This document shows, one piece after another, positions 2,199-60,971 of a stretch of DNA of 64,000 nt; the first letter of the stretch is position 1, and every line of letters begins with the position of its first letter. The stretch covers positions 14,756,001 to 14,820,000 of the forward strand of contig JAQFVV010000006.1 of NCBI GenBank assembly GCA_028023455.1, written 5' to 3'. The stretch comes from Epiperipatus broadwayi (lineage: Eukaryota > Animalia > Onychophora). The notes beneath the pieces were generated by a model. The model saw nothing but the letters and a program-made list of their open reading frames with translations. It did no database searches and had not been told where the DNA came from. Made by a program: the position numbers and the translations under genes.

Positions 2199-3000
2199 GT
2201 TTTTTTTTAGGTTATGTTTTGTTTAAAGTTTTTAATAGTGACCATGTAGCAGCAAATATATCTGGATGTGCAATTTTGCCATCTCTGGCCTTTAATTGTT
2301 CAAGCTTCTTTGAGAATGTGGCTGGGTGCTTTGTGGTATTGTCTCCAAGGCAGAAAGTACATCTGGTGCACCAGAGACTATATAAACAAAAAGTTGCTGC
2401 ACGAGCTGCTGGTATTGAGCCTTTACTGAGTATCTCTAATAGGTTATCAAGTGTGATGTTATTTTGTCTATATGTGTTAATCATAATTTCTCGGGTATTT
2501 GTTAGGCCTATGCAGGTATGAAATAGGTGCTGTTGTGTTTCTTCTTCCCTGTGGCATAGGGAACAAACAGCATCAATTTTTTTGTAAAATCTGTGGTATT
2601 TAAGGAAATAGGAGATAGGTAGAGCATGATCATTTACCTTTAAAAGAAAGTCAAAAAATTTGGGTTCCATTGACCACTTTTTAAATCACTGCATTAAAAG
2701 ACTATTGTTCATATTTAGCATAGGTGAGTGAGGATATGTTGTTATGTCTGGGTATTGCATATTATAAATAGTCCAATAGGTGTATCTACCAACACCCAAA
2801 AAAGACACCTGATCATAAATGCTTTGAAGTTGGTTTACGAGCAAAGACAAATATCCGTGTGAAGGTGGTGGTCGGTCTGTGGGTGTTATTTGAAGAATGC
2901 ATTCAAGGGCTGGAAAACTTCTTATCAGTGCAGCTAGGAGTTTGTGAAAAATTTGTATGGAGTGAAGACCTAATCCATTTCTAGTTGTTGGAAGACACGA
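2199..3000 (-). mobile_element. 5'-truncated L1/Tx1-like LINE, 3' end
   Basis: CLPTTRNGLGLHSI motif near 2990-2950, then ORF 2212-2670 with a zf-RVT-type CSLCHREEETQQHLFHTC knuckle. A-rich tail at about 2199-2209. Confidence 0.8.
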
Positions 3001-3580: not shown

Positions 3581-4384
3581 TAAATTTTATATACAAATCA
3601 AAAGAATACAAAATATTTTTTATACATTCTAAAAACTTCACAAATTTTTCAATATTCTTGAAACATACCATAATTAATATTTGAATAAAAATATTTATAA
3701 TAAATGATTGTTTTTTTTATCAATGTCAGTTTTATTTAATAATTATATATGACTGATAGACACACAGCCATGATTGAATTGTCATTTGGAAAATATAAAG
3801 GTCGATATAATATAATTTTTTGCAAAATATTATATTTTTTATAAGAATATTGGTTAGAAGAAATGATGCCTGATGGCTTACTTATTGCTTATATAAAATG
3901 AGATAATATATATAAAACTGGTTATCTTGTCTGTCAATCAAATGTTAAAAGCTATCCAAATATAACTGGAAATTCATGGTATAGTACTAGTATATTCATC
4001 TTCCTTGCTATGACCTTGTGTTCAAATCTAGGCTAAATGAATCATAAATTTTTTTTAGGTCACAAAAAATAAAAGAAGTTTTTTGTAAGTAACTGGCTTA
4101 TAACAACCTAGTATTTAGTAAATGGATATCTATCTATTGTCAATTAGAAGGTAATGGTTCTTGGTTGATCTATGTTGATTTTCGCCATTGGCAGCAGAGG
4201 TACCTAACTTGTATTGTTATGCTTACCCTGTCTAAATTTTTTATCTATTGCCTGATGCTTTTTTGAAAATAGATTTTAAATGGTGAAATTATATCAGGTT
4301 ATATATCTAAAGGAAAATATGACTTTCTATTGTTCACAGACATCATATCATTACCCTTCTTTATGTGTATGCAAGCTGTTTACA

Positions 4385-5908: not shown

Positions 5909-6129
5909 GTTAGTTGTCATTATTTAATAATTTTTTAATATACTTATTCCTGTTGTTATTTACAGTATGCAATTACATTTTTAATAATAATAATAATAAT
6001 GTTTATTAAAATAAATACATTCATTGTATTCATTCATTTAAATACAGGTCAAAAATACAAATGTTATTCTTCTATTAATCCCTAGTTGCGCTTTTACGTA
6101 GAATTTTTTTATAACAATTTAGTTATTTA

Positions 6130-6768
6130 ACAGGCAAAAACTCTCCATATAGTAGTGTCACCTTGTGCTAACCAGACTAATCAATGGATTCCAGAAGGCT
6201 TGTGCATAAAATCCCTATCTAGTGCCTACTCATCCAATATTCCCAGACTAGTTTCTGGCTTGTGGTCTTTGTCAGTGAGGAGCCTAGGATCTGAGAGCAC
6301 TGCACCTAGATTTTAGGATCTAATGCAACCCTCCAGCAGCCACCTTTTATCTCTACTTAACTACAAAACTATGAGAATGAAATTGAAAACACAATAATAT
6401 TTTCAATCTAAGCTCAATAGCTTATGTAGTCATATGGGTCTGAATTTCAATTCAGAACCCATATATTTTGGTGACTTTGGCTCTTTAATAACCATAGCCA
6501 CTATTATCCTATTAGGCAGGATTGGTGTTAAACCACTAAACATCACATGATCACCATCTCATGCTAGCACATGATGAAGGCCACAAGCCAGAAACTAGTC
6601 TGGGAATATTGGATGAGTAGGCACTAGATAGGGATTTTATGCACAAGCTTTCTGGCATCCATTGATTACTCTGGTTAGCACAACGTGGCACTACCATATG
6701 GAGAGTTTTTGCCTGTTTAATAACAGTTATGTGCTAGCATGAGATGGTGATTATGTGATGTTTAGTAT
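6130..6768. mobile_element. Family A HHR retroelement, tail-to-tail fold-back insertion
   Basis: Minus arm with HHR 6241-6281 (CUGACAA, damaged) and plus arm with HHR 6568-6606 (AUGAUGA, 5' strand of stem I lost). 12-bp TSD TTTAGTTATTTA at 6118-6129 and 6769-6780. Confidence 0.85.
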
Positions 6769-6943
6769 TTTAGTTATTTACGTGAAATTTTAAATATCAT
6801 ACAAAATATGTTAATAATAATAGCAACAATAAATTACATTTCAATAATATATTAATTATATAATAAAAATGTAGGGAATTTTATGCAAACATCGCTACTA
6901 GGTTGCACAACATAAATACCTATGTAAGTATACTATACAGAGG

Positions 6944-7560
6944 CTAGTCTGCGGATATTAGATGAGTAAGTACTAGATGGAGATTTTATGCACAAACTTT
7001 TTTGCACCCATTGATTACTCTGGCTTGCGCTGAGTGGTCCTACTGTATGGGGAATTTAGCCTCTGTGCAAACAGCTTGGGTAAGCATAAAGAATGGCGAT
7101 CAGGTGATGTTTAGAGATTTAATACTAATCCTACCCAATAGAATTATGATGGCTCTGGTTATTAAAGAACCAAAGAGACCAAAAAGTATGGATGCTGAAC
7201 TGAGTTCAGATCTATACACAACTATACAGGCTAATGAGCTTCAATTGAAAACATTTTTGTGTTTTCAATCTGGACTCAAAGCTTTACAGTTAGTTAATAA
7301 GGTAAAAGATCGCTGCTGGAGAGTTGCATTAGATCTTAAGATCTAGGTGCAGTGATCTCAGATCCAAGGCTCCTCACTGATAAAATCCACAAGCTAGAAA
7401 CTAGTCTGAGGATATTGGATGAGTAGGCACTAGATGGAAATTTTATGCATAAATGTTCTTGCATCCATCGATTACTCTGGCATGCACTGAGTGGCGCTAC
7501 TGTATGGAGAGTTTGGTCTTTGTGTAAACAACTTAGCATAAAGAATGGTGCTCCTGTGAT
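6944..7560 (+). mobile_element. Family A HHR retroelement, head-to-tail 1.3-mer
   Basis: CTAGTC recurs at 6944 and 7401 (period 457). HHR at 7371-7412 is damaged (CUGAUAA, stem II broken). Confidence 0.85.
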
Positions 7561-12590: not shown

Positions 12591-15500
12591 CAGGCTTCTA
12601 AATTTAACCCACTCTTTAAAAATATAATAAAGACATCTTTAAAAAAAAAGATGCCCAAGAGTATTTCTGGAAGAACTTGTCATCATCATTTGACCCAAAT
12701 AATGGACCGCGCATGTCTTTTTTATCACAGTTTCATATTTATACATAGCAAGCATCTATATATACTTTTAACATATGTCTTTATGTTTTAAGAATTGAGT
12801 GGAATTTAAATGTTTTATTACTTATTGTAAATACCATACATGATCATAAAAAGAGGGAAATTTATATTCATGCTAGAATTTAATATATATTAATCTCTAA
12901 ATGGATTTGAATAACATTAAAATAATTTATAGCCTAATAAAAATGATTGAGAAGTAATCGTTAATATTTAACCTAGATGATATCATCAAACTGAATGCAT
13001 ATAAATGGAGTCATATTTATAAATTAAAATATATATAAATTAAACATACTTTTTTTAATTTTAGTTTTTCTTTTGCATTTTTTTTGTAAGTTTACTGAAC
13101 GTATGAGGGGGGAGGGGGTTGGTTATAAATGGTCATGTCTTATAGAATTGGGGGTATGAAATCAGATTTTGTAATTCAAAATAAATAAAATTATAACACA
13201 ATTGTGTCCAATTAATAGTAAAATCATATGTATATACATAATCTTATAATTGAATATTTATAAATACAGTAATTAGATATATGTAAAGTATAACTTAAAA
13301 TTTTTTATCCACTTAGGAGCACTTTCGACTATCCTTGTAGTTTTTGTCAACTAACACTTTGAAAGGCTAACCTTCCCACAATTTCCATGATCTTAACATT
13401 TGCTGCCTGTCTGTTAATAAAGTCTTGTGAAATTAACAGACAGGCGGCAAATATTAAGATCCATGTTCAATTTAAAGTTTATATATGCAATAACAATGAA
13501 GCAATAAATTATTATCTTACAAATAACTATTATAAAATGCAGAAGGGATTTAACTATTTCCAGTTTACCCTTTTTCAATCTGACTGCATCAAAGCACTCT
13601 GTACTATGGAGAGATACATTCCATCATACTCCAGTAATTTACATAGGGATGTTGTTTAATGTGCATTTAAAAAGTGCTGAACTAGTATGGAATTTGAATT
13701 ATAATTATATACAAAATCTGATCACGCAATTCAACAGTCGTTACTGTGTATGGGCTTGAAAATTTTATTCAGTGATTCTGCATTAAAGATTCTATAACTT
13801 ATCATTAGATTTATTGCACACACACACACATATATATATATATTGTAACTGGATCCCCGTACAACCCCTTTATTACCTCGGTTGTAACAATTTCCTGATG
13901 AGCATGTTGCAGGAAGGAACCATCGATTGGCTTTCCCCAATACAGATGTCACCCCCCCCCCCACAACAATATTTCCTGCTCATCAGAGGATGTAGCACCA
14001 TAAAGACTGGAAGCATCTAGAAATTTCTGTGTTTGGTTTCCCAAACGGCGCCACTAGAGTTCCATCTCACTACAACCTGACTTACCTAGGTCTAGTTAGA
14101 TAGCTCAGGAGGCATGAGATTCTCGTGAACAAGTGCAATGTACAACAAGTGATGCAACATGAACAACTGGATAATTAAAATTAATTTTAAGTAACAACAA
14201 TTTTATTTAACAACAGGTTTAAATAAATGTCCATCAAACAAAATATTTATTGATTGTCCCTTGTATCTCTTCAGCCTATTTTCAATAACATTTTAATATG
14301 AACTAAAGAATGTAATTTGTTGAGAGTATAATAAAGTCCTTCTTTCAATAGTTCTTTAACAATTTGCATCTTTAGTCATTTAGTTAATTCACAGAGAGGA
14401 GTGCAATATATGAAGACAACAGAGATAATAATGAAGACAACTGATAGCACTAGTCTGGGGATATTGGATGAGTATGCATTAGATAGGGAATTTATGAACA
14501 AGCCTTCTGGCATCCATTGATTACTCTGATTGGCACAGGGTGGCACTACTGTATGGAGAGAGTTTTGCCTTGTTTTTTAAATATTTCATTTACAGTCCAT
14601 TGTGTCTCTTGGTATACCTCCAATAATAATACAATATGAATTAAAGAATGCAAGTTCTTTAACAATTTACATTTTTAGTTATTTAGTTAATTCACAGAGA
14701 GGGGTGCAATATATGAAGACAACAGAGATAATAATGAAGACAACTGATAGCATTTAATTCAGAATTCCACTTAATTGAGATTTGTAGTCTTTTGGGTAGT
14801 TGTCACATGTAACGTGGCTTAAATTGACTCGTGTAGGAAGATATTCTTTACAGACAAGAGCATTTCTATTATTCCAGTTAATTTTAGGTGAGTCAAAGTA
14901 TAATAAGAATATTTCTATTCATTGTTATCCAAATCCAGGTTTGAATCCATAATATAAGCACATTTATATCCATTGGTTATTCAGGTAAAATATAAGTGCA
15001 TGTATTTCCATTGGCTATTCAGATAAAATATAAGTGTATGTATTTCCAACTGTCCAGATATCAATTCATCTTGCAAATGCATTTATTTGGTATTTCCGAT
15101 TTCATAAGATATATATATAACCTTAACCGTGACACATTGTTTTGGTATTCTTACTTCTCAACTCGTATATATAACATGTTTTAATTCCGTGTTTATATTC
15201 CTTTTCTCAGAGTTTTCAAATAATAAATAAATTAAAAAAAAAAATGATTGTCTTAATCTTTCAACGCATATAACCATTAACTTTTATTGACGTACTAATT
15301 CATATTTATATGTTTGAATTTATTCATAATGTTATAAATTTGCTAAATACATTCATTTTGTATATTTTCTAATTTTATCTGAGTTATAAACACATTATTA
15401 TAATTTAGTTAGTTATAGTTATATGTAATAGCTCAGCATTTTTAATTTTCCTGAAATACTTATTTGTATATCAGTAATATAAATAGTGATAAGTATTCAT

Positions 15501-18814: not shown

Positions 18815-19085
18815 TAAAACAGGCAAAACTTACTATATATATTTTACCACACACAGCAAGCTAGAGTAATCAATGGATGCCAGAAGGCTTGTGCATAAAA
18901 TCCCCATCTAATGCCTACTCATCCAATATCCCCAGACTAGTTTCTGGCTTATGGCCTTCATCAGTGAGGAGCCTTGGATCTGAGAGCACTGCATTTAGAT
19001 CTTAGGATCTATATATATATAGTGAGTTTTGCCTGTTTTAACAACAGTTATATACAAGCATAAGAAGAGATGGTCATGTGATGTT
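18815..19085. mobile_element. Family A HHR retroelement, short fold-back insertion
   Basis: Minus arm with an intact HHR, flipping to plus after 19011. TSD AATAAC/TGATATGT at 18802-18814 and 19086-19098 (1 mismatch). Confidence 0.85.
18929..18970 (-). ncRNA. Type I hammerhead ribozyme, family A, intact
   Basis: UCCUCA-CUGAUGA-A GGC CAUAA GCC A-GAAAC UA GUC-UGGGGA. Stem I is 6 bp with one G-U. Stem III is the palindrome ACUAGU. Predicted cleavage at 18935/18934. Confidence 0.88.
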
Positions 19086-19401
19086 AATAATGATATGTCA
19101 GACAATAAAATACCATGAGCAGTTGTAAGAACTTTAAAATGTGACATTTCATACGCATGCTCACTAACTAATTACTTCATGTAATAGTTATAGAAAAATT
19201 AAAACAGAATTTAGTTTAATGGGATTTAAAAATATTATATTAAAGCCTTATATCTCTTAAAGTAACATGGCGAGAAATTTGATCATCAAAATATAAAATA
19301 AATTGTCAGATTGAAGCCATAAATGCTTTAACAATTAATTTTGGGAATCAAAAAATAATTTTTTATATACTAATGTGTAATTTTGTATATAATAAACAAA
19401 T

Positions 19402-19738
19402 AATTTCTTATATATTGCTTATAATAATTTCTCTGGTATACACTTTAATGCAAAATTTTTTTTAAAATAAAACTTCTTTATTTTCCTGACAGTTTCGACT
19501 ATCCAGCAGTCTTCATCAGAGCGGTCTCAATTTCCTCTACCTTTTTTATCATCAGAGCATTCTCAATTTCCTTTACTTTTAAATCTATATAAAAAAAAGT
19601 AGAGGAAATTGAGAACACTCTGATGAAGACTGCTGGATTGTCGAAACTGTCAGGAAAATAACAAAGTTTTATTAAAAAATTTTTTTTGCATTAATGTGTA
19701 TATGAGAAAAGTTATTATAAGCAATATATATGAAGAAA
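19402..19738. repeat. Family D fold-back element
   Basis: Inverted arms of about 140 bp with HHR-like cores at 19483-19524(-) and 19615-19656(+). Confidence 0.78.
19615..19656 (+). ncRNA. Hammerhead-like core, family D (weak stem I)
   Basis: CUGAUGA-A GAC UGCUGGAUU GUC-GAAAC U GUC, with only 2 bp of stem I. Paralogs at 19483-19524(-), 11028-11070(-), 11133-11175(+), 43312-43353(-) and 60744-60785(+), with decayed copies near 1955-1990 and 13320-13350. Confidence 0.5.
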
Positions 19739-20499
19739 TGCATAGAAAGTAAAGGAGAAGAATAAGAGTATATACTTCTAAGTCATTTCTTATAAATCAT
19801 TTTTCATCTATTGACTATGATGGTTAATATTAATCACTATTTCTATACTAATGGTCAAATGGGATGTATTTATATTAATTGCCAATAGATATGTGTTACA
19901 TTTTTTCAACATAATGGAAGCTTGAATTTTTTTTATCTTGAATTCTGGAATCAGAACAAACAATCAAGACTTGGTGACCCTGTTCAACAGCCATAGAAGC
20001 AGAAGATTTATTACTGTCTTCATTATATTACTATTATATTTTTTGTTTTTAGTCAGTGTGTGGAGCAAACTCTTTTCTGCAGTGGTTATAGTTGAAAATG
20101 ATGTTGATGATTTGAGTTATCAATTTAAACTAATATTTCCATCCTTAATCAAATAATATGTAGAGATATTTATTTACTGACCAATGCTGTATGACCAATT
20201 AATTGGGAACTGATCATCTAAAAGAAAAGTCCTTAGCCTGCTTTTGACCTGACAGGAAGCTATATGAACCAATATGCCTTAATATTAAGGATTATTTTGT
20301 AAGACATGTTCTTCAATTCAAATAATTCTCCTATGACTTTACACCTCAAGAATGTTTTTGGAGTCAGTATCTTAAAAGATACTTATCCAAAACTGGGGTT
20401 CTTGGATGCAGAGACTAAAGCACTCAAGTATTCAAACACCTGTCAATTACTCATCCTTCAAATTTATATTAAATTTTACTTCCAACTTACTCGAATCTA

Positions 20500-21134
20500 A
20501 CCAAAGACTCATCAAACTAACAAAACACTGGCACCTTCCCCCAAAGTATGGTGACTTCCTCATTAAAGTAAATCTGGAATCCCTTCCCACAAATGCTTTT
20601 CTCTACTATAAGAGAGGCTTCAAAAATCTAGCAAGCACATGCTCACTCTGCCAGAGAGAAGATGAAACCATCAACCACATACTAACAAACTGCCCATGTC
20701 TACAAAAACTCCCAATCAGCATTACAGAACCAATTCAAGAACCAAACCCACAACTCTTTGTCTCTGACCAATGTGATAGATCAAGTTACTTATGCACAGC
20801 TTAGATTGGCAACATTTGTGAACTTTACAATCTGGTCACTTCGGTGTAAGCTGGTCATAAGAAAGTCTGAATACCCGAACATTAAGACAGCCTTATATCG
20901 AATGCTGAATAAAATTCGCAAAACAGACTTTTCCACAGCCTACCTTAACATTGCAGAAAACACATGGGCTCTAGTTGATCTACCCAGTGAAGAAATGCTC
21001 TAAGATTACTCCTGAACACAACACCACAGAACTTTATAACACATGCATATAAATCATTGTAATAACCTGTATAATCCATAGTAACTATGTAAAACCAATG
21101 TAACCATTGTATATTTCCTCAATAAAGTTGAAAG
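20500..21134 (+). mobile_element. 5'-truncated L1/Tx1-like LINE, 3' end, with TSD
   Basis: CSLCQREDETINHILTNC knuckle and a frameshifted C-terminus homologous to the 2.2-kb copy. 16-bp TSD AACTTACTCGAATCTA at 20484-20499 and 21135-21150. Confidence 0.85.
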
Positions 21135-22660: not shown

Positions 22661-23185
22661 TACTGTATGGAGAGTTTAGCCTGTGTGTAAACAGCTTGTG
22701 TAAATCATAAGAAATGGTGATCATGTGATGTTTAGTGGTTTAAAACCAATCCTTGCCTATTAGGATTATGGTGACTGTGTTTATTAAAGAACCAAAGACA
22801 CCACAAAGTATGGATGCTGAACTGAGTTCAGGTCTATACAACTATACCAGCTAATGAGCTTGACTTAAAAAACATTATTATGTTTTCATTTTGCACTTAA
22901 AAACTTTATAGTTAGCTAATAAAGTAAAAGGTGGCTGCTGGAGGGTTGCCTTAGGTCCTAAGATCTAGGTGAACTGCTCTCAGATCCAAGGCTCTTCACT
23001 GATGAAATTTACAAGCTAGAAAATTCTTTGGGATGTTGGATGAGTAGGGACTAGACAGGGATTTTATGCACAAATCTTCTTGCATCCATTGATTGCTCTG
23101 ACTTGCATTGGTGGCGCCACTGTATGGAGAGTTTAGCTTCTGTGTAAACAGCTTGTGTAAGCATAAGAAATGGTGATCCTGTGAG
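22661..23185 (+). mobile_element. Family A HHR retroelement, head-to-tail 1.15-mer
   Basis: ACTGTATGGAGAGTTTAGC recurs 457 nt apart (22662 and 23119). HHR at 22993-23032 has lost stem III and the cleavage site. Confidence 0.85.
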
Positions 23186-23540: not shown

Positions 23541-23814
23541 CCATTTTAGTTCTTTTTAACTCTTTGATCCATTTACTCGATATATAGTTTTTTTTTATTT
23601 ACTCGCCAGTATTATCATGAAGACATTTTATTTATTTGCTTTAAATGACTTCACTACATGTTTCATATATTGTATTTAAAATAAGTAAATAAAATTTCTT
23701 CTTATTTATATCTAAGATCAGTCTTTGTGAAAAAATCAGTTAATAAGATATCACATATGTTTTCAGAAGCAATGTTATCTACTGTAAATTTGAGTAATCT
23801 CTAAATACAGTAAT

Positions 23815-24521
23815 CATCACATGATCACATTTCCTATACTAGCACATTAATTGTTGATAAGCAGAGCAAAACTCTCCATACAGTATTGCCACCTGTGCTA
23901 AACAGAGTAATCAATGGATGCCAGAAGGCTTGTGCATAAAATTCCTATCTAATGCCTACTCATCCAATATCCCCAGACTAGTTTCTGGCTTGTGGCCTTC
24001 GTCAGTGAGGAGCTTTGGATCTGAGAGCACTGCATCTAGATCTGTATGGAGAGTTTTGCTCTGTTTATCAACAGTTAATGTGCTAGTATAGGAAATGTGA
24101 TCATGTGATGCTTAATGGTTTAACACCAATCCTGCCTAATAGGATATTGGTGGCTATGGTTGTAAAAGAGCCAAAGACACCTAAATGTATGGGTGCTGAA
24201 CTGAGTTCAGACCCATATGACTATTTAAGCTATTGAGCTTAGATTGAAAATATTTTTTGTGTTTTCAATTTCATTCTCATAGTTTTGTAGTTAAGTAGAG
24301 ATAAAAAGTGGTTGCTAGAAGGTTGCATTAGATCCTAAGATCTAGATGCAGTGCTCTCAAATCCAAAGCTCATCACTGTCGAAGGCCACAAGCCAGAAAC
24401 TAGTCTGGGGATATTGGATGAGTAGGCATTAGATAGGGATTTTATGCACAAGCCTTCTGGCATCCAATGATTACTCTGTTTAGCACAGGTGGCAATACTG
24501 TATGGAGAGTTTTGCTCTGTT
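23815..24521. mobile_element. Family A HHR retroelement, best-preserved copy (inverted arm plus full 456-nt monomer)
   Basis: Minus arm 23815-24043 (intact HHR) and plus arm 24043-24521 (HHR 24370-24411, CUGUCGA). 13-bp TSD TAAATACAGTAAT at 23802-23814 and 24522-24534. Confidence 0.9.
23970..24011 (-). ncRNA. Type I hammerhead ribozyme, family A, intact
   Basis: UCCUCA-CUGACGA-A GGC CACAA GCC A-GAAAC UA GUC-UGGGGA. Only the freely variable N7 differs from the family consensus. Confidence 0.88.
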
Positions 24522-25284
24522 TAAATACAGTAATGTTATTATAGTCAAATCATTGACTATTTCCTATATATGAGCTGCATTAGATTCAAAATCCTCCCTG
24601 ACAAAGACCATAATAAAAGATATTATCTGGTTTCCATTGACAACTCAAGCTTAGAATAGAATTATTCTTAAATTCTAATCTACTATATATGTTAGGGTCC
24701 TATTTTCAACACAGTGCAATCATTAGTCGTATTCTTTATTTACAATTCAAGTACCATAATTAATTAATTAATTAACTGCAGATATAATGACTTATCACAG
24801 TATAGATGTTGCAACTTTTAATTTATTCATTAATTAATAAATTAATTTATTTCACGCTAATAGAAATTGTGAGTCTTAAAAATAATTTGAAAGCGTAAAC
24901 ATTCCTAATTTTATTTTATAGCTTTTATAAACAATAAAACAGGATGTATCATTCTTGACAATAAAATTAAAAAAAATTCTGGCAAACAGAAATATAACTA
25001 CAAAAAGGAAAGATGTTTAAAGAATTGGTCATTAACCAATAATAATCAATTTCTGTAAATGATTTTTATAACATACCTCATCTAATTAACTATTCATTAT
25101 ACGCAAATCAATAAAAAAAGTATCTAACTATAAAATAATAATAGAATATTTATGAACTGTAAGGAAGTAATAGTTAGAATAACTTGATATTTGATAAAAT
25201 TACCAAATTATTTTTATAGCCACGTAAACTGTTTTAATTGCAGTAAAGCAACTGTCCATAATATATATACTACAAAGAAATCAA

Positions 25285-25985: not shown

Positions 25986-26369
25986 ATATACCTTTGTTAA
26001 TATTTTATTAGACTGATGAGATATGGCACTTAAGTTATTAAACTCATAGTCAATTGTCGATTATAATGTTCTCTGTATATATTTCAAAGAATAATGTTTT
26101 CAGCTAATTTTTAACTTGGCTAACTTTTTTGAGATCTTTGAAATATGCATGTCGAACTTTATCAGTTATATAATTTATTCTATAAAAATCTGAAACTTAT
26201 ATGAATCAGCAATTACCAATAATTGTATATATCATTTAATAGTTTACGTTATAATAAGCTCAGTACGACATTGTCAGTTTATGTACTGATTTAATGAAAC
26301 AATTATTAAAATAGAAGAAGAAACAAGAATGAATCAGGATTGGAAGAATAGTTTGGAAATTAGTAGTAA

Positions 26370-27043
26370 AGCAGTAGCAACTCTCTGTTTACAGTAGTGC
26401 CACCCATTGCAAGCCACAGTAATCAATGGATGCTAGAAGGTTTGTGCATCAAAATCCCTATCTAATGCCTACTCATCCAATATCCCCAGGCTAGTTTCTA
26501 GCTTGTGGCCTTTATCAGTGTGGAGCCTTGCATCTGGCAACACTGCACCAATGCAATCCTTCAACAGTCCCCTTTTACCTTTTTAATTAACTATAAAGCG
26601 ATGAGTTTAAATTCAAAACAAACAATGTTTTCAATCCAAGCTAATTAGCTTGTATGATCATATAGATCTGAACCCACTTGTTTATCTATACATTTTGTTG
26701 TCCTTAATTTTTTTATTAACCATTCATCACCATCATCCTTTGGCCAAGATTGGTATGCATCACTAACGTCACATATCCACCCTTTCCTATGCTTACACAA
26801 TCTGTTTAAACAGTAACAACTCTTCATACGGTAGTGCCATCCAGTGCAAGCCTTAATAACCAATGGAACCCAGAAGATTTGTGCATTTAAATATCTATAT
26901 TGCTAATCCAATCACCAGACTAGTTTCTAGCTTGTGGTCTTTATTAGTGAGGAGACTTGGATTCGAGAGCACTATATCTGGATTTTCGGATCTAGCCAAG
27001 CCTTGTATAAGCATAAGGAATGTTGGTTATGTGATGTTTTAAC
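26370..27043 (-). mobile_element. Family A HHR retroelement, decayed tandem dimer with short inverted end
   Basis: Two damaged HHRs at 26483-26524 and 26912-26953, about 430 nt apart. TSD AAATTAG/ATAGTAA at 26357-26369 and 27044-27056. Confidence 0.8.
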
Positions 27044-27659: not shown

Positions 27660-27779
27660 GTAATTTTTTTTTTGTATTCATTATCTCTTGCCATCTCTTT
27701 TTTTTTTATTATCAGAAGATATTGATTTAATGTTAATATCAGGTTTTCTAAAGTGTTTATACTTCAAGGTAAGATATTA

Positions 27780-28182
27780 AAACAGACAATACTCTCTTTA
27801 CGTATTGCCACTCAGTGCAATGGATGCCAGAAGACTTGTGCATAAAATCCCCATCTAGTGCCTACTCATCCAATATCTCCAGACTAGTTTCTGGCTTGTG
27901 ACCTTCATCAGTGAGGAGCCTTGGATCTGAGAGCACTGCAGGTAGATCTTAGGATCTAATGCAACCCTCTAGCAGCCACCTTTTATCTCTACTTACCTAC
28001 AAAACTATGAGACAAATTGGAAACACAATAATATTTCCAATCCAAGCTCATCGGCTTATATAGTCATATAGGTCCGAACTCAGTTCAGTACCCTTACATT
28101 TTGGTGTCTTTGGTTCTTTAATAACCATAGCAGCTAAGAGAAAGCATAAGAAATAGTGATCATGTGATGTTTATTGGCCTAA
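27780..28182 (-). mobile_element. Family A HHR retroelement with short inverted end
   Basis: HHR at 27876-27917. 14-bp TSD AAGGTAAGATATTA at 27766-27779 and 28183-28196. Confidence 0.88.
27876..27917 (-). ncRNA. Type I hammerhead ribozyme, family A, core intact
   Basis: UCCUCA-CUGAUGA-A GGU CACAA GCC A-GAAAC UA GUC-UGGAGA. One stem I mismatch and a U-G pair in stem II. Confidence 0.8.
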
Positions 28183-28269
28183 AAGGTAAGATATTATTGC
28201 AAAATTTTCCTCAGATAATTATTATAGTTTATAATTCAGAATTTGATTACAATATATAATTTGACATTT

Positions 28270-42700: not shown

Positions 42701-43720
42701 TTAATACTGTAAATAGTTTTGATTTATACATATATTACATGCTTCTTTTTATAATTAAGTCATAATTGTCCCCTAATTTTGACACAGGATTAACTTCATC
42801 AATCCAAAATCATTCCTCTTTAATCATTAGTTTATAATTACATTTTAATGGTTTATTTATGATTTATTCCAAAAAGAGTAAAAATGACAGGAATAATCAT
42901 TAAGAAGGCAAAGAACTCTTTAAAAACAAACATACTTTTCAAATATTTGGATAAGTCAGAATTTTTAATAAACTGACAACTGGTTTTATAGAAATCTCAT
43001 TTCAATATTTTGACAATTTGTTTAGATTTAGTAACATATAATGAATTAATGAATGGAATTACTTGTAGAAATTCTAAATTTAGATTTAAAAAAAATTAGA
43101 AATAATTAATAAAGCATTCACCTTATGCTAATGTTATTTATCAACTATTACAAAATGAAATCAAAATTATATACAAGAGAAATTGTTAATAAATATATTA
43201 AAATAAAATTCCTAAAAAAAATGTACACTTTCTTAGGTGTTTTAATCCCTTTCATTTTTTTATGTCATTTATATTAATAAGTTACTAAAAATACAATGCC
43301 TTTTATTCATTTGTTTGACGGTTTCGACTGTCTTGCAGTCTTCTTCAGAGCTGTAAAATATAATTTTATTACATTATTTTTTAGTGGACTTTTTATAAAA
43401 AAAATTCTGCTTAGGCATCTGTTATATATTAAAATGTGTAACGAATTACAATATATATATATATATATATGATCTCTATCTACTTTTGAACTAGTAGAGG
43501 AACTGGACAATAGAATGTTTTGACCAAACAATAATATTTAATCATTATTGGCAATAGTTTGCCATGTTTTTAATACAATTTAGTGTAAAGTTGTATCATC
43601 AACTTTAATGATTCAATTGCAAATCCTTTTTTTTTCCACAGTTATGTCGCCTAGTGGAAACTTTTGTGAACAGTAGATGGCAGTGCTTAATAAATTCCTA
43701 TCTGCTGCTGACCTCCATTA

Positions 43721-47809: not shown

Positions 47810-48180
47810 ATAAATAATATTTCTGCAGTTTAATTTTCACACAGGATAGGGACTGGTTTCTATCCACTTTTAACACTTTGTGGAGGGTGTAAACATATGA
47901 TCAAAGACATGTGAGTATGATCCCCAAGATGTGCATTTATCACTTGTCCCAGACAATCTATGCCTATCTTTATCATTGCTCAGATTTTTATCTGGGCTAA
48001 CTGATGAGTGCTGCTTCAGCATGAAATGTGCATCTTGGAGATCATGCATTTTTTTTACATGTCCTGGGTTATATGTTTATGATTACACCCCTCCACAAGG
48101 AATTAAAAACAGGTAGAAAACAGTCCCTATGTTGCATGAGACTGGCGTAGTGAAAATTACCTACTGAAGTATTAATTAAA
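47810..48180. mobile_element. Family C HHR element, fold-back copy
   Basis: Imperfect inverted arms around 47950-47990 with an intact HHR in the right arm. The 3' part is homologous to 57010-57150; another decayed copy lies at 50395-50530. Confidence 0.78.
47997..48038 (+). ncRNA. Type I hammerhead ribozyme, family C, intact
   Basis: CUAA-CUGAUGA-GUGCUG CUU CAGCAU-GAAAUGUGCAUC-UUGG. Stem II is 6 bp, stem III is AUG/CAU, predicted cleavage after C48034. Confidence 0.85.
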
Positions 48181-52346: not shown

Positions 52347-52507
52347 AAACCACATCACATGATCACTATCTCATACTAGCACATAATTGTTATTAAACTA
52401 TTCAAAACAAAGCAAAACTCTCCATATAGTTGTGCATCCATTGATTGCTCTTGTTAGCGCAAGATGGCACTACTATATGGAGAGTTTTGCTTTGTTTTGA
52501 ATAGTTT
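52347..52507. mobile_element. Ribozyme-less miniature fold-back derivative of family A
   Basis: Both family A termini joined as a hairpin. 12-bp TSD TATAAGTAAATT at 52335-52346 and 52508-52519. Confidence 0.8.
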
Positions 52508-55379: not shown

Positions 55380-56340
55380 TAAATAATTTGACATGTAAAA
55401 ATATTTTATAAATGTATTAAATAAGCTCCACACCAACATACATATGAATAAATCTACATCAGTTGGCCCACTCAGGTACTTTTATTATATGTTCAGTATT
55501 TATCAATAGTAAATTTCTACCTTTTGATTGACAGATGTCAAACTCATTCCACCCACAACTTTGATACCATCCATTCTAGATAAATACAGTAATGATTATC
55601 ACCAGTCAGCTATTAAACTAGAGATTGTCTTTAGCCCAGATATAAACTTTAAACCTCAGTTAAAGATTAATATATCTGATTTATTTAATTAAACACAAAC
55701 TTACTATGTTATTCGCATTTCTTTTTCCCATGTGTAATATTCTTTATAATACGAATTAACCTCTAAACCTGCCCCCAAGATGCATTTCATACTGAATTAC
55801 CACTCATCAGTTGGCCCAGGTTATCATCTCATATGTAAAATATTTAACAATAGTAAAATTGTTACATTTTGATTTACAAGTATTAAACTTAATCCATCCA
55901 CAACTTTGACATCACCCACTGTAGATAAATGCAGTAATGATGATCGCTAACAGTTATTAAACTAGAGATGGTCTCTAGTGCAGATATAAACTTTAAACTT
56001 CAGTTAAATATTTATATATCTGATTTTTTAATTAAGGGCACACACATATATGGAGTTATTCATATTTCTTTCCCATGTGTAATATCTTTTATAATGTGAA
56101 TTAAACAATCTCCACACATTCTTTTGAAATCATATGAATAAAGATATAATAAAAGATAAATACCCCCCCCCCCCCAGGTGCATCTTGTGTTCATCAGTTG
56201 ACTCAGGTCACCATCTCCGGATAGATATCTTTATCATATGTGTAGTACTTTTCAATAATCGATTGTCACATTTTGATTGGCAAGTGTTTGAAATTTCTAT
56301 TTTTAGAATATGCGTTGCATAACAATTCTTTTTTAAAAAC
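55380..56340 (-). repeat. Tandem array (about 2.5 units, 350-390 bp) of a family C HHR-bearing unit
   Basis: CATCAGTTG core recurs near 55457, 55805 and 56192 with homologous spacers. A spacer homolog also lies at about 4680-4850. Confidence 0.78.
55775..55814 (-). ncRNA. Hammerhead ribozyme, family C, core intact with weak stem II
   Basis: CCAA-CUGAUGA-GUGGUAAUUCAGUAU-GAAAUGCAUC-UUGG. Confidence 0.7.
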
Positions 56341-56974: not shown

Positions 56975-57016
56975 CCAACTGATGAATGCTGGTTCAGCGC
57001 GAAATGTGCATCTTGG
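56975..57016 (+). ncRNA. Hammerhead ribozyme, family C, near intact
   Basis: CCAA-CUGAUGA-AUGCUG GUU CAGCGC-GAAAUGUGCAUC-UUGG. A-C mismatch at the first pair of stem II. Confidence 0.78.
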
Positions 57017-58894: not shown

Positions 58895-59223
58895 TAAACC
58901 ACTAAACATCACATGATCACCTTTTCTGTATGCTTACACAAGCTGTTAAAATATTAGCAAATTCCAAACAATAGTGCCACCTAATGCAATCCATAGTAAT
59001 TAATGGATGCAAGAAGATTTTTGCATAAAATCCCATCTAGTGACTATTCATCCAATATCCCATATCCAAGGCTCCTCATTGATGAAAGCCACAAGCTTGA
59101 AACTAGTCTGGGGATATTAGATGAGTAAGCACTAGATGGGATTTTATGCACAAATCTTCATGCATCCATTGAGTACTATGGCTTGCACTAAGTAGCACTA
59201 CTGTTTAGAGAATTTGCTACTGC
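58895..59223. mobile_element. Family A fold-back copy nested in an RTE LINE
   Basis: Minus arm 58895-59062 and plus arm with HHR 59073-59114. Interrupts the RTE ORF relic between the endonuclease and RT regions. Confidence 0.82.
59073..59114 (+). ncRNA. Hammerhead ribozyme, family A, C3U variant
   Basis: UCCUCA-UUGAUGA-AAGC CACAA GCUU-GAAAC UA GUC-UGGGGA. Stem II is 4 bp; the core has C3 to U. Confidence 0.72.
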
Positions 59224-60971
59224 TAAAAAGAAGGATAACATCAGTAAATGTGCGGAAGACTTTTATAAGAATTATAATAAAGAGCAAGAAAACAAAGTGT
59301 CCTCTATAATTACTATGTCCATTGAATTTTCAAGTATTTTAAATGAAGAGGTAGATGCAATTAAATCTATGAAGAAGGGAAAAGTTCCAGGTAATGATGG
59401 AATTATAATTGATATCTTAAAAGAAGCATGTGAAGAAATTAATTTTTTTTTTGGTTAAACTGTATATAAAATGTCTAAATGGTAAAGTTGTGCTAAATTA
59501 TTGAAAGAACGGAGTAGTAGCACTGATAAATTTAAGAAAAGTCATAATGAAGATAGTAGAAATTGTAAACCTATTTGTTTTATACAAAATCTGCATGATG
59601 ATAATTACAACTGGTCTGCAATAAACTTTGGATTCTAATCAATTTAAAGAAAAGTTAGAGAAAAAACTAATGAATATGAATTGCCATTATGGGTAGATTA
59701 TGAAAAGGCATTATATAAGCATTTCTTCAGAGATTAAAGCATTGGATCATCAAGATCACAGGATGTTGTCATATTCTGAAGAATAGTTATCAAAATGCAA
59801 CAGCAATGATTAGATTATGTAATACTATTAACAAGATCAACATTGAGAAAAATATGTCACAGAATGATTCCATATCTCCAAATCTTTTTACAGCAGTTTT
59901 ACAAGAAGTATCTTATGGATTAAAATGGGACACTCGGGAAATAAAAGTAAAGGGAGATTATTTAAGTCATTTATATTTTGCAGATGGTATAATTGTTTTT
60001 GCAAATAATGCTTCATAACTTTGGGAAATGTTGCAGGAGTTATCAGATGAAAGTAAGAAAATGGGACTAAAGGTAAATGCAAAAAAAACTAAAACGATGT
60101 TCAATGGATTTTTTCAAAAGCAAAAAAAAAATAAAGATTAGTAATTATAAATTGAAAGAAGTTAACAACTACAAGTAGCTTAGTCAGATTATTAGTATAG
60201 ATATGGAATATATAGATAAAATTAATCATACCATTAATATTGGATGGAATGGTTTTGATAGAAATAATATATTATTAAAAGGAAATATGCCTGTGTGTTT
60301 GAAAAATAATGTTTTTACTATATGTGGTTTGCCAATTCTTACCTATGGATTTAAAATTTGGACACTTAACAAAAGAGTAATGCATGGACTTCATACCATT
60401 TAAGGAAGCTTGGGGAGATGTAGTATATTAGGAATAATAAGAGATCAAAAATGAACTACATGAATGAGAGAACATATAGATATCACGACATCATTGAAAG
60501 AATATGAGAGATTGAAATGAATCGGAGTTGCTCATATTGCTAAAAGAGAAGGTAATAGATGAAGTGCAAAGACATGACCGATGTCACTAGAGGTTCATGA
60601 TAACTGGGCAAAGTATTAATCTAAGTTACTGAAGTCTGTAATATAAATAGATGTTCAATGCTTTTTCATTTATTCTATATTGCTTATATTCAGTGAATCT
60701 TTAAAAATATCACTTCTTTACCACATTTTACAATTGTATTTTAGATATCTGAAGAAAACTGCTAAACAGTCGAAACTATCGGATAATAAAAAGTATTATG
60801 AAAAATGCAGACAAGGGTGTGCTTTTTTAAAGAGATTTATTTAATTAATGTAAAAACTAGTTAAAAAATAAAATGAATAAAGAGCACAAGAAACTGAAAA
60901 GAAAAAAACAATATCTAATCTTCAATAAATCAGTATATTCTATAAGCAATAGAAAATAATATTCATTAATA

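Follow-up and report, generated by a model that had tools for sequence, protein, structure and literature searches.

Insertions of Penelope-like elements (PLEs) show a high rate of 5′ truncation, partial tandem copies that form pseudo-LTRs and, frequently, an adjacent inverted copy that is itself 5′ truncated (Craig et al. 2021, PMC8557442). They also carry a tail of 30 to 40 bp, often at just one end (PMC8557442). Purified PLE protein from Anolis cleaves and extends both DNA strands and prefers AT-rich sites (Frangieh et al. 2024, PMC11167929). This protein begins reverse transcription (RT) inside the RNA, at two sites on either side of the tail that lie approximately 90 nt downstream of the element's hammerhead ribozyme (HHR). 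In vitro, the PLE accepts unprocessed RNA as its template, mutation of the HHR leaves insertion normal, and none of the reads ends at the HHR site (PMC11167929). PLEs and metazoans have type I HHRs in which helix I measures 6 bp, helix III is short and palindromic, and A9 is followed by one additional nucleotide; these HHRs are thought to be active as dimers (PMC4209133).

Animal non-LTR retrozymes are built of 150- to 450-bp units, are flanked by target-site duplications (TSDs) of >4 bp, and are expressed as self-paired circular RNAs (circRNAs), with PLEs as the proposed mobilizers (Cervera and de la Pena 2020, PMC7229834). In the animal retrozymes related to the repeat described here, circRNAs are the chief form in which the RNA accumulates (PMC7229834). 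A 2026 preprint (Li, Clavereau, and Pollet; bioRxiv 10.64898/2026.07.22.740005) derives animal retrozymes from the terminal repeats of PLEs; it does not describe the anatomy of junctions. The published link between retrozymes and PLEs rests mainly on co-occurrence and on similarity to PLE terminal repeats. Here, we describe a repeat family in which the junctions themselves (TSDs, inverted arms, two RT starts, and a one-sided tail) provide evidence for Penelope-type mobilization of an animal retrozyme.

We analyzed one 64-kb stretch of the Epiperipatus broadwayi genome (29% GC), which we refer to as the window. The focal insertion is 708 bp long and is a young copy of a mobile repeat of 456 nt that is non-coding, carries a hammerhead motif, and has a very high copy number. 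We call this repeat family A and number its unit q1 to q456, corresponding to positions 24043 to 24498 of the window. Together with its TSD, the compound insertion occupies positions 23803 to 24534. It consists of an inverted arm of 228 nt and a direct arm of 480 nt, joined head to head, with a 12-bp TSD on both sides (AAATACAGTAAT at 23803 to 23814, and the same 12-mer at 24523 to 24534). The inverted arm (23815 to 24042, minus strand) is 5′ truncated. According to BLAST comparison with the unit and with a trimer of it, this arm covers q297 to q456 and then q1 to q68, crossing the unit boundary q456/q1 without a break, with the long (tailed) 3′ terminus, ...CATGTGATG, on the outside. The direct arm (24043 to 24522, plus strand), which amounts to 1.05 units, covers q1 to q456 and then q1 to q24, with the short 3′ terminus, ...GCTCTGTTT, on the outside. 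Its final 24 nt (24499 to 24522, plus strand) are a second reading of the unit start, identical to 24043 to 24066, and give the arm its repeat after one period. An earlier note on this DNA had described the monomer under the interval 23815 to 24521; of this interval, 23815 to 24042 does not belong to the direct monomer but is a partial copy in inverted orientation. Across 185 nt, the two arms have 96.8% identity. Given that this mutual identity exceeds the identity of either arm to any other copy in the window, both arms arrived together.

The 456-nt period of the direct arm, in which 24043 recurs at 24499, has counterparts in two older single-arm copies on the plus strand. The copy at 6938 to 7560 (1.37 units, q352 to q67) has a period of 457 nt, with 6939 recurring at 7396 and a 166-nt overlap that is 80.6% identical. 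The copy at 22661 to 23184 (1.15 units, q454 to q66) likewise has a period of 457 nt, with 22662 recurring at 23119 and 86.7% identity. The fixed unit of 456 to 457 nt that the earlier note had proposed is thus borne out by periods of 456, 457, and 457 nt in three independent copies. A further copy, at 26370 to 27043, had been described as a decayed tandem dimer. It is decayed, and it does exceed one unit, but its structure is that of a paired insertion (26369 to 27042): a minus arm of 1.4 units (26369 to 27007, q274 to q24, short end), with a period of approximately 440 nt after indels, adjoins an inverted plus arm of 35 nt (27008 to 27042) that has the long end, at approximately q72. Overall, multi-unit copies in the window reach only 1.05 to 1.4 units, and dispersed insertions range from 0.1 to 1.4 units, with no long arrays. 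Tandem Repeats Finder reported no array of approximately 456 nt in the 64-kb window because no copy there attains two full units. The flanks of the copies are unrelated and homology ends at the element borders; therefore, we treat the copies as independent insertions.

Nine insertions in the window are paired head to head, at 4341, 6130, 18815, 23815, 26369, 27780, 52348, 58895, and 60971, and AT-rich TSDs of 11 to 15 bp are recognizable in six of them. The insertion at 6130 to 6768 combines a minus arm of 0.97 unit (6130 to 6572, q36 to q22, short end) with a plus arm (6576 to 6768) that spans q339 to approximately q76 and has the long end; its TSD, TTTAGTTATTTA, lies at 6118 to 6129 and 6769 to 6780. 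At 27780 to 28182, a minus arm (q111 to q24) and a plus arm (q43 to q81) are enclosed by a 14-bp TSD, AAGGTAAGATATTA, at 27766 to 27779 and 28183 to 28196. The short insertion at 52348 to 52507 has a minus arm ending at q78, a plus arm ending at q34, and a 13-bp TSD, TATAAGTAAATTA, with its left copy from 52335 and its right copy from 52508. The TSDs of two other paired insertions are less perfect: 13 bp with one mismatch at 18815 to 19086 (arm ends at q24 and q72), which also contains an intact HHR core (18935 to 18964, minus strand), and approximately 15 bp with two mismatches at 58895 to 59223 (arm ends at q80 and q21).

We mapped all arms in the window onto the unit and classed 22 arm termini. 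The 3′ termini form two classes, at q21 to q34 (11 arms) and at q66 to q89 (11 arms). Within the short class, nine arms end at q21 to q25 and the others at q29 and q34; the eleven arms of the long class end at q66 to q72 or at q78 to q89. Every one of the nine paired insertions combines a short with a long terminus, an outcome with a probability of 0.002 (0.5^9) if the arms chose their termini independently. The distance between the two terminus sites, which we refer to as the tail, is 43 to 60 nt and is present on one side only. Neither a poly(A) tail nor a microsatellite tail was found at any family A terminus in the window. The 5′ ends of the arms, by comparison, are spread across the whole unit, and coverage of the unit by the copies climbs toward its 3′ part, which is the expectation for 5′-truncated retro-copies. 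The inner junctions of the arms fall at a different unit position in every paired insertion, with truncation from one side only.

These data bear on the view, put forward in the earlier note, that the copies are circularly permuted and start in different or only partly shared registers. Tabulating the registers over the 64-kb window, as that note had suggested, gave 5′ ends that are indeed scattered, but 3′ ends that are limited to two fixed sites. Among the three copies on which the view was based, the one at 6938 does start in a register of its own (q352), but the other two have the same 5′ register (q1 and q454). Free permutation is not what the copies display: they have two fixed 3′ termini, variable 5′ truncation, and usually an inverted second arm plus a one-sided tail. 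Three plus-strand arms (at 22661, 24043, and 19018) have start points no more than 6 nt apart (q454, q1, and q3), and the short RT start follows approximately 22 nt downstream; this cluster could be a preferred RNA 5′ end, a template-switch point, or chance. Because the copies at 6938, 26369, and 6130 extend 5′ of q1, q1 is not an obligatory start.

Each unit contains one type I HHR motif, CUGAUGA-A-GGC(N5)GCC-A-GAAAC-UA-GUC^UGGGGA, with predicted cleavage after q363 (24405). In the focal insertion, the inverted arm has an intact core (23976 to 24005, minus strand) that reads CUGACGA, A, a GGC/GCC helix II, A, GAAA, CUAG, and UC, recognized by pattern match, alignment, fold, and pair counts; cleavage is predicted after the C at 23976. 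The core of the direct arm (24376 to 24405, plus strand) has been inactivated by private mutations, reading CTGTCGA (A6 to U at 24379) and carrying a C to A change in helix I at 24372. Most family contigs from a DNA sequencing run have A at 24379 and C at 24372, which are the intact letters. Within the window, the core CUGANGA...GAAA...GUC is intact at 18935 to 18964, 23976 to 24005, and 27882 to 27911, all on the minus strand. The best-conserved segment of the unit is q361 to q408, which we count in favor of the HHR.

The minimum-energy fold contains helix II as well as helix I, the latter made of UCCUCA/UGGGGA with AUCCAA/UUGGAU as its extension. The HHR pairs that we propose are formed in 89.6% of cells over 13 copies, compared to 26 to 43% for slid partners. 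Helix II is closed by a G-C pair in six copies, by A-U in five, and by G-U in one, a count that may reflect few events given that the copies are related. Helix III consists of an A-U and a C-G pair around a 2-nt loop, which together make the palindrome ACUAGU. An extra A after CUGAUGA (after A9) is invariant. Helix II is limited to 3 bp between two A residues; one of these, the A between 11.1 and G12, corresponds to no described feature, which counts against the motif and leaves its catalytic activity putative. The 6-bp helix I, the additional nucleotide that separates A9 from 10.1, and a helix III of 1 to 2 bp capped by a palindrome (ACUAGU in family A) are shared with the minimal type I HHRs of PLEs and metazoans, newt satellite 2, and the Schistosoma Sm-alpha repeats, and they imply activity as a dimer only. 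The family A motif differs from those minimal HHRs in the additional A, in the 3-bp helix II, and in going unrecognized by Rfam: the hammerhead models gave no hit at the gathering score in the whole window, and none at an E value of ≤10 in the focal kilobase or in a 131-nt slice with an intact copy. A full-text literature search with HHR sequence strings returned only matches to unrelated primers. Despite the Rfam result, the core, the pairing, and the covariation point to a type I HHR of the metazoan/PLE style.

Since its helix III is only the palindrome ACUAGU, the predicted HHR would probably cleave itself as a dimer. Most dispersed copies have one sense-strand HHR each and could not release unit-length RNA, given that helix III needs a dimer; two HHRs in tandem are present only in arrays or in copies like the arm at 26369 to 27007. 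The earlier note had supposed that cleavage and ligation by the HHR define the unit. The genomic copies do not show this, because the termini at q21 to q25 and q66 to q89 sit 114 to 182 nt downstream of the cleavage site at q363/364. Approximately 23 arms have a 5′ end that can be compared with this site; three of these ends are at q352 to q366, none is exactly at q364, and the arm at 14449 includes the uncleaved site. The idea that 5′ ends concentrate where the HHR would cleave was dropped, as three of approximately 23 arms at q352 to q366 is not significant.

Hammerhead motifs in the window are not limited to family A. A different hammerhead family, with the core CUGAUGA-A-GACU...AGUC-GAAAC-UGUC, occupies 19405 to 19734, where two inverted arms of 143 nt, separated by 44 nt and with 87% complementarity, have one hammerhead each (19488 to 19519, minus strand; 19620 to 19651, plus strand). 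Family A is therefore not alone in having a head-to-head anatomy. HHR-like cores of at least two further families lie on the minus strand at 1328 to 1358, 43317 to 43348, and 55777 to 55810 and on the plus strand at 48001 to 48036, 56979 to 57014, and 60749 to 60788; examples are CUGAGGA-GUGC CAGA GCAC-GAAAC-CAUG-GUC and CUGAUGA-GUGCUG...-GAAA-UGUGCAUC. In total, the pattern CUGANGA...GAAA...UH has 42 matches in the window, compared to approximately 8 expected.

The longest stop-free frame in the circularized family A unit is 61 aa, and the family has no conserved ORF; the statement in the earlier note that there is one HHR per period and no credible ORF stands as written. The old copy at 6938 to 7560 has a stop-free stretch of 126 aa, unusually long for AT-rich DNA. 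This stretch is unique to that copy (the others have 61 to 85 aa), and no start codon in it gives ≥120 aa. The predicted circular fold of the unit RNA is strongly self-paired, with a free energy of −149.7 kcal/mol compared to −108.6 ± 6.6 kcal/mol for dinucleotide shuffles (z = −6.2) and 69% of the bases paired. The short RT start sits within a predicted hairpin, CUGUU-UAUC-AACAG. No PLE ORF was found in the 64-kb window, which has no ORF of >152 aa, and its sole RT-related remnants are zf-RVT (LINE-like) fragments. These are two short ORFs, at 2212 to 2670 (minus strand, 152 aa) and 20406 to 20804 (plus strand, 132 aa), whose matches are to zf-RVT, a domain of LINE-type reverse transcriptases, and both are remnants of LINEs rather than PLEs.

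Sequencing runs indicate that family A is abundant. In a DNA run, summed depth was 1e6 to 3e7 on the element and 30 to 90 on its flanks, which indicates a very high copy number. Near-identical family A words occur in the sequencing runs of approximately 10 organisms, some of them labelled "RNA?". In three of the "RNA?" runs, the element is covered but its flanks are not; their contigs are just 80 to 260 nt long and none spans the unit, too short to tell a circle from a concatemer. The ratio of RNA to DNA depth in the "RNA?" runs is about flat along the element, and carry-over of DNA is possible.

Taken together, the features of family A make it very probable that this is a non-coding, non-autonomous animal non-LTR retrozyme that bears a hammerhead and derives from PLEs. 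We propose that an RNA of more than one 456-nt unit, either the concatemeric transcript of a tandem array or a circularized monomer, would be bound in trans by the RT/GIY-YIG protein of a PLE. The endonuclease would make staggered cuts 11 to 15 bp apart in AT-rich DNA, and each freed 3′ end would then prime reverse transcription at one of two fixed internal RNA sites, q21 to q25 or q66 to q89, so that the intersite stretch of 43 to 60 nt would appear as a tail on one side alone. The two cDNAs would converge, halt at variable points (resulting in 5′ truncation), and be joined head to head. Any cDNA that ran beyond 456 nt would read its own start again and so would acquire the 456/457-nt periodicity.

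The copies of 1.05 to 1.4 units show that the template was longer than one unit. To this extent, the proposal in the earlier note that the copies were reverse-transcribed from a circular or multimeric RNA holds; the choice between a circle and a concatemer is not made by these copies, because reverse transcription that starts internally, as on unprocessed RNA in vitro, explains copies of more than one unit equally well from a concatemeric transcript. A period exceeded in genomic copies is by itself no proof of circular RNA, given that fixed internal RT starts on any multi-unit RNA suffice. The same PLE-type element could thus move without a circle, by way of linear concatemeric or read-through transcripts of arrays, with the HHR as a module inherited from PLEs and dispensable for insertion. 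We give this possibility serious weight, somewhat short of an even chance. It is consistent with the Anolis experiments, in which PLE reverse transcription starts internally on unprocessed RNA and HHR mutants insert normally (PMC11167929), with the 114 to 182 nt that separate the family A termini from the HHR cleavage site, and with the clustering of three 5′ ends at q454 to q3, which may mark an RNA 5′ end. That last point is weakened by the copies at 6938, 26369, and 6130, which pass 5′ of q1 and argue against an obligatory start there. Also pointing toward a circle are the preference of related animal retrozymes for the circRNA form (PMC7229834), the unusual self-pairing of the unit when folded as a predicted circle (z = −6.2), and the position of the HHR in the best-conserved segment of the unit. 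By analogy with the animal retrozymes (PMC7229834), a circular family A RNA of approximately 456 nt is a reasonable prediction, and we consider the chances that it exists to be evenly balanced.

Explanations that do not involve a PLE account for fewer of the observations. A SINE-like passenger of LINEs, with inverted arms produced by twin priming during LINE target-primed reverse transcription, would also be expected to have 5′ truncation and TSDs of 11 to 15 bp, and LINE-type zf-RVT fragments are present within the window. However, twin priming yields an inverted segment that starts internally and abuts the direct segment without duplicating it, whereas the two family A arms share the 3′ region in which they end and have as many as 185 nt in common. 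Given in addition that poly(A) and microsatellite tails are absent from all termini, and that neither the strict combination of short and long termini (nine of nine) nor copies of more than one unit are LINE features, we regard a LINE passenger as very unlikely. We give hardly any credence to an origin at the DNA level, as a fold-back/inverted-repeat transposon or as a satellite spread by recombination or extrachromosomal circular DNA. The large inverted repeats, the tandem periodicity, and the very high copy number are what such elements might show, but the TSDs vary in length (11 to 15 bp), the inner junctions fall at varied unit positions with one-sided truncation of the arms, and the outer termini of the arms differ by 43 to 60 nt instead of forming symmetric terminal inverted repeats. 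A simple TIR/fold-back structure was rejected because the two inverted-repeat segments cross instead of nesting, and DIRS-type and Helitron-type elements were rejected on the basis of TSDs, termini, and the missing tail repeat.

The assignment of family A to PLE-derived retrozymes agrees with most properties of the described systems. With EN+ PLEs (Penelope/Poseidon and Neptune), family A has in common that copies are often 5′ truncated or partially tandem, that an inverted, likewise 5′-truncated copy adjoins, that the tail is confined to one side, that targets are AT rich, that RT starts at two internal sites, and that an HHR lies approximately 100 nt upstream of the RT start region. Unlike PLEs, family A lacks an ORF and would have to be mobilized in trans; its tail is 43 to 60 nt, compared to the published 30 to 40 bp; and its short RT start lies in the CUGUU-UAUC-AACAG hairpin, whereas that of the Anolis PLE lies in an AC-rich stem-loop. 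With metazoan non-LTR retrozymes, it shares a non-coding, low-GC unit of a few hundred nucleotides with one type I HHR each, TSDs of >4 bp, a unit RNA predicted to be highly self-paired, head-to-tail copies (of no more than 1.4 units in the window), and PLEs as the proposed mobilizers. With 456 nt, the unit reaches or exceeds the upper limit of the retrozyme range (150- to 450-bp repeats and circRNAs of approximately 170 to 400 nt), its copies in the window are dispersed instead of lying in long arrays, its 3-bp helix II lies between two A residues, and family A is known here from genomic copies, whereas metazoan retrozymes are expressed as circRNA. The likeness to plant LTR retrozymes extends to their being non-autonomous and HHR bearing and to the proposed movement through circular RNA (Cervera et al. 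2016, PMC4918200), but the type III HHRs in LTRs, PBS and PPT, 4-bp TSDs, and Gypsy-type mobilization of the plant elements are all absent in family A (PMC4918200). The name retrozyme, already used in the earlier note, therefore suits a non-coding unit with one HHR that fits this class. Family A clearly exemplifies a kind of element already described, and it opens no new kind of system. Its anatomy is useful for annotation, as compound insertions with inverted and tandem parts confuse repeat finders.

The pairing of one short with one long terminus in nine of nine insertions raises the tentative idea, which we consider more doubtful than probable, that Penelope-type integration in vivo is obligately asymmetric, with one cDNA starting from q21 to q25 and the other from q66 to q89. 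The arm from the short site is usually the longer of the two. If the asymmetry is true genome-wide, then a functional difference would exist between the halves of the PLE complex or between first- and second-strand priming, and abundant ORF-less retrozymes would serve as a natural read-out of the PLE integration cycle.

Some target sites resemble the element at its priming sites. The focal target site at 24523 to 24552 (AAATACAGTAAT...) resembles q25 to q54 of the unit, just 3′ of the short RT start (ATCAACAGTTAAT...), with approximately 9 of 13 matches. In addition, several termini of the long class have 3 to 4 nt in common with their own TSD, for example, TTTA at 6765 to 6772. Both kinds of likeness may reflect microhomology at priming, or chance in AT-rich DNA.
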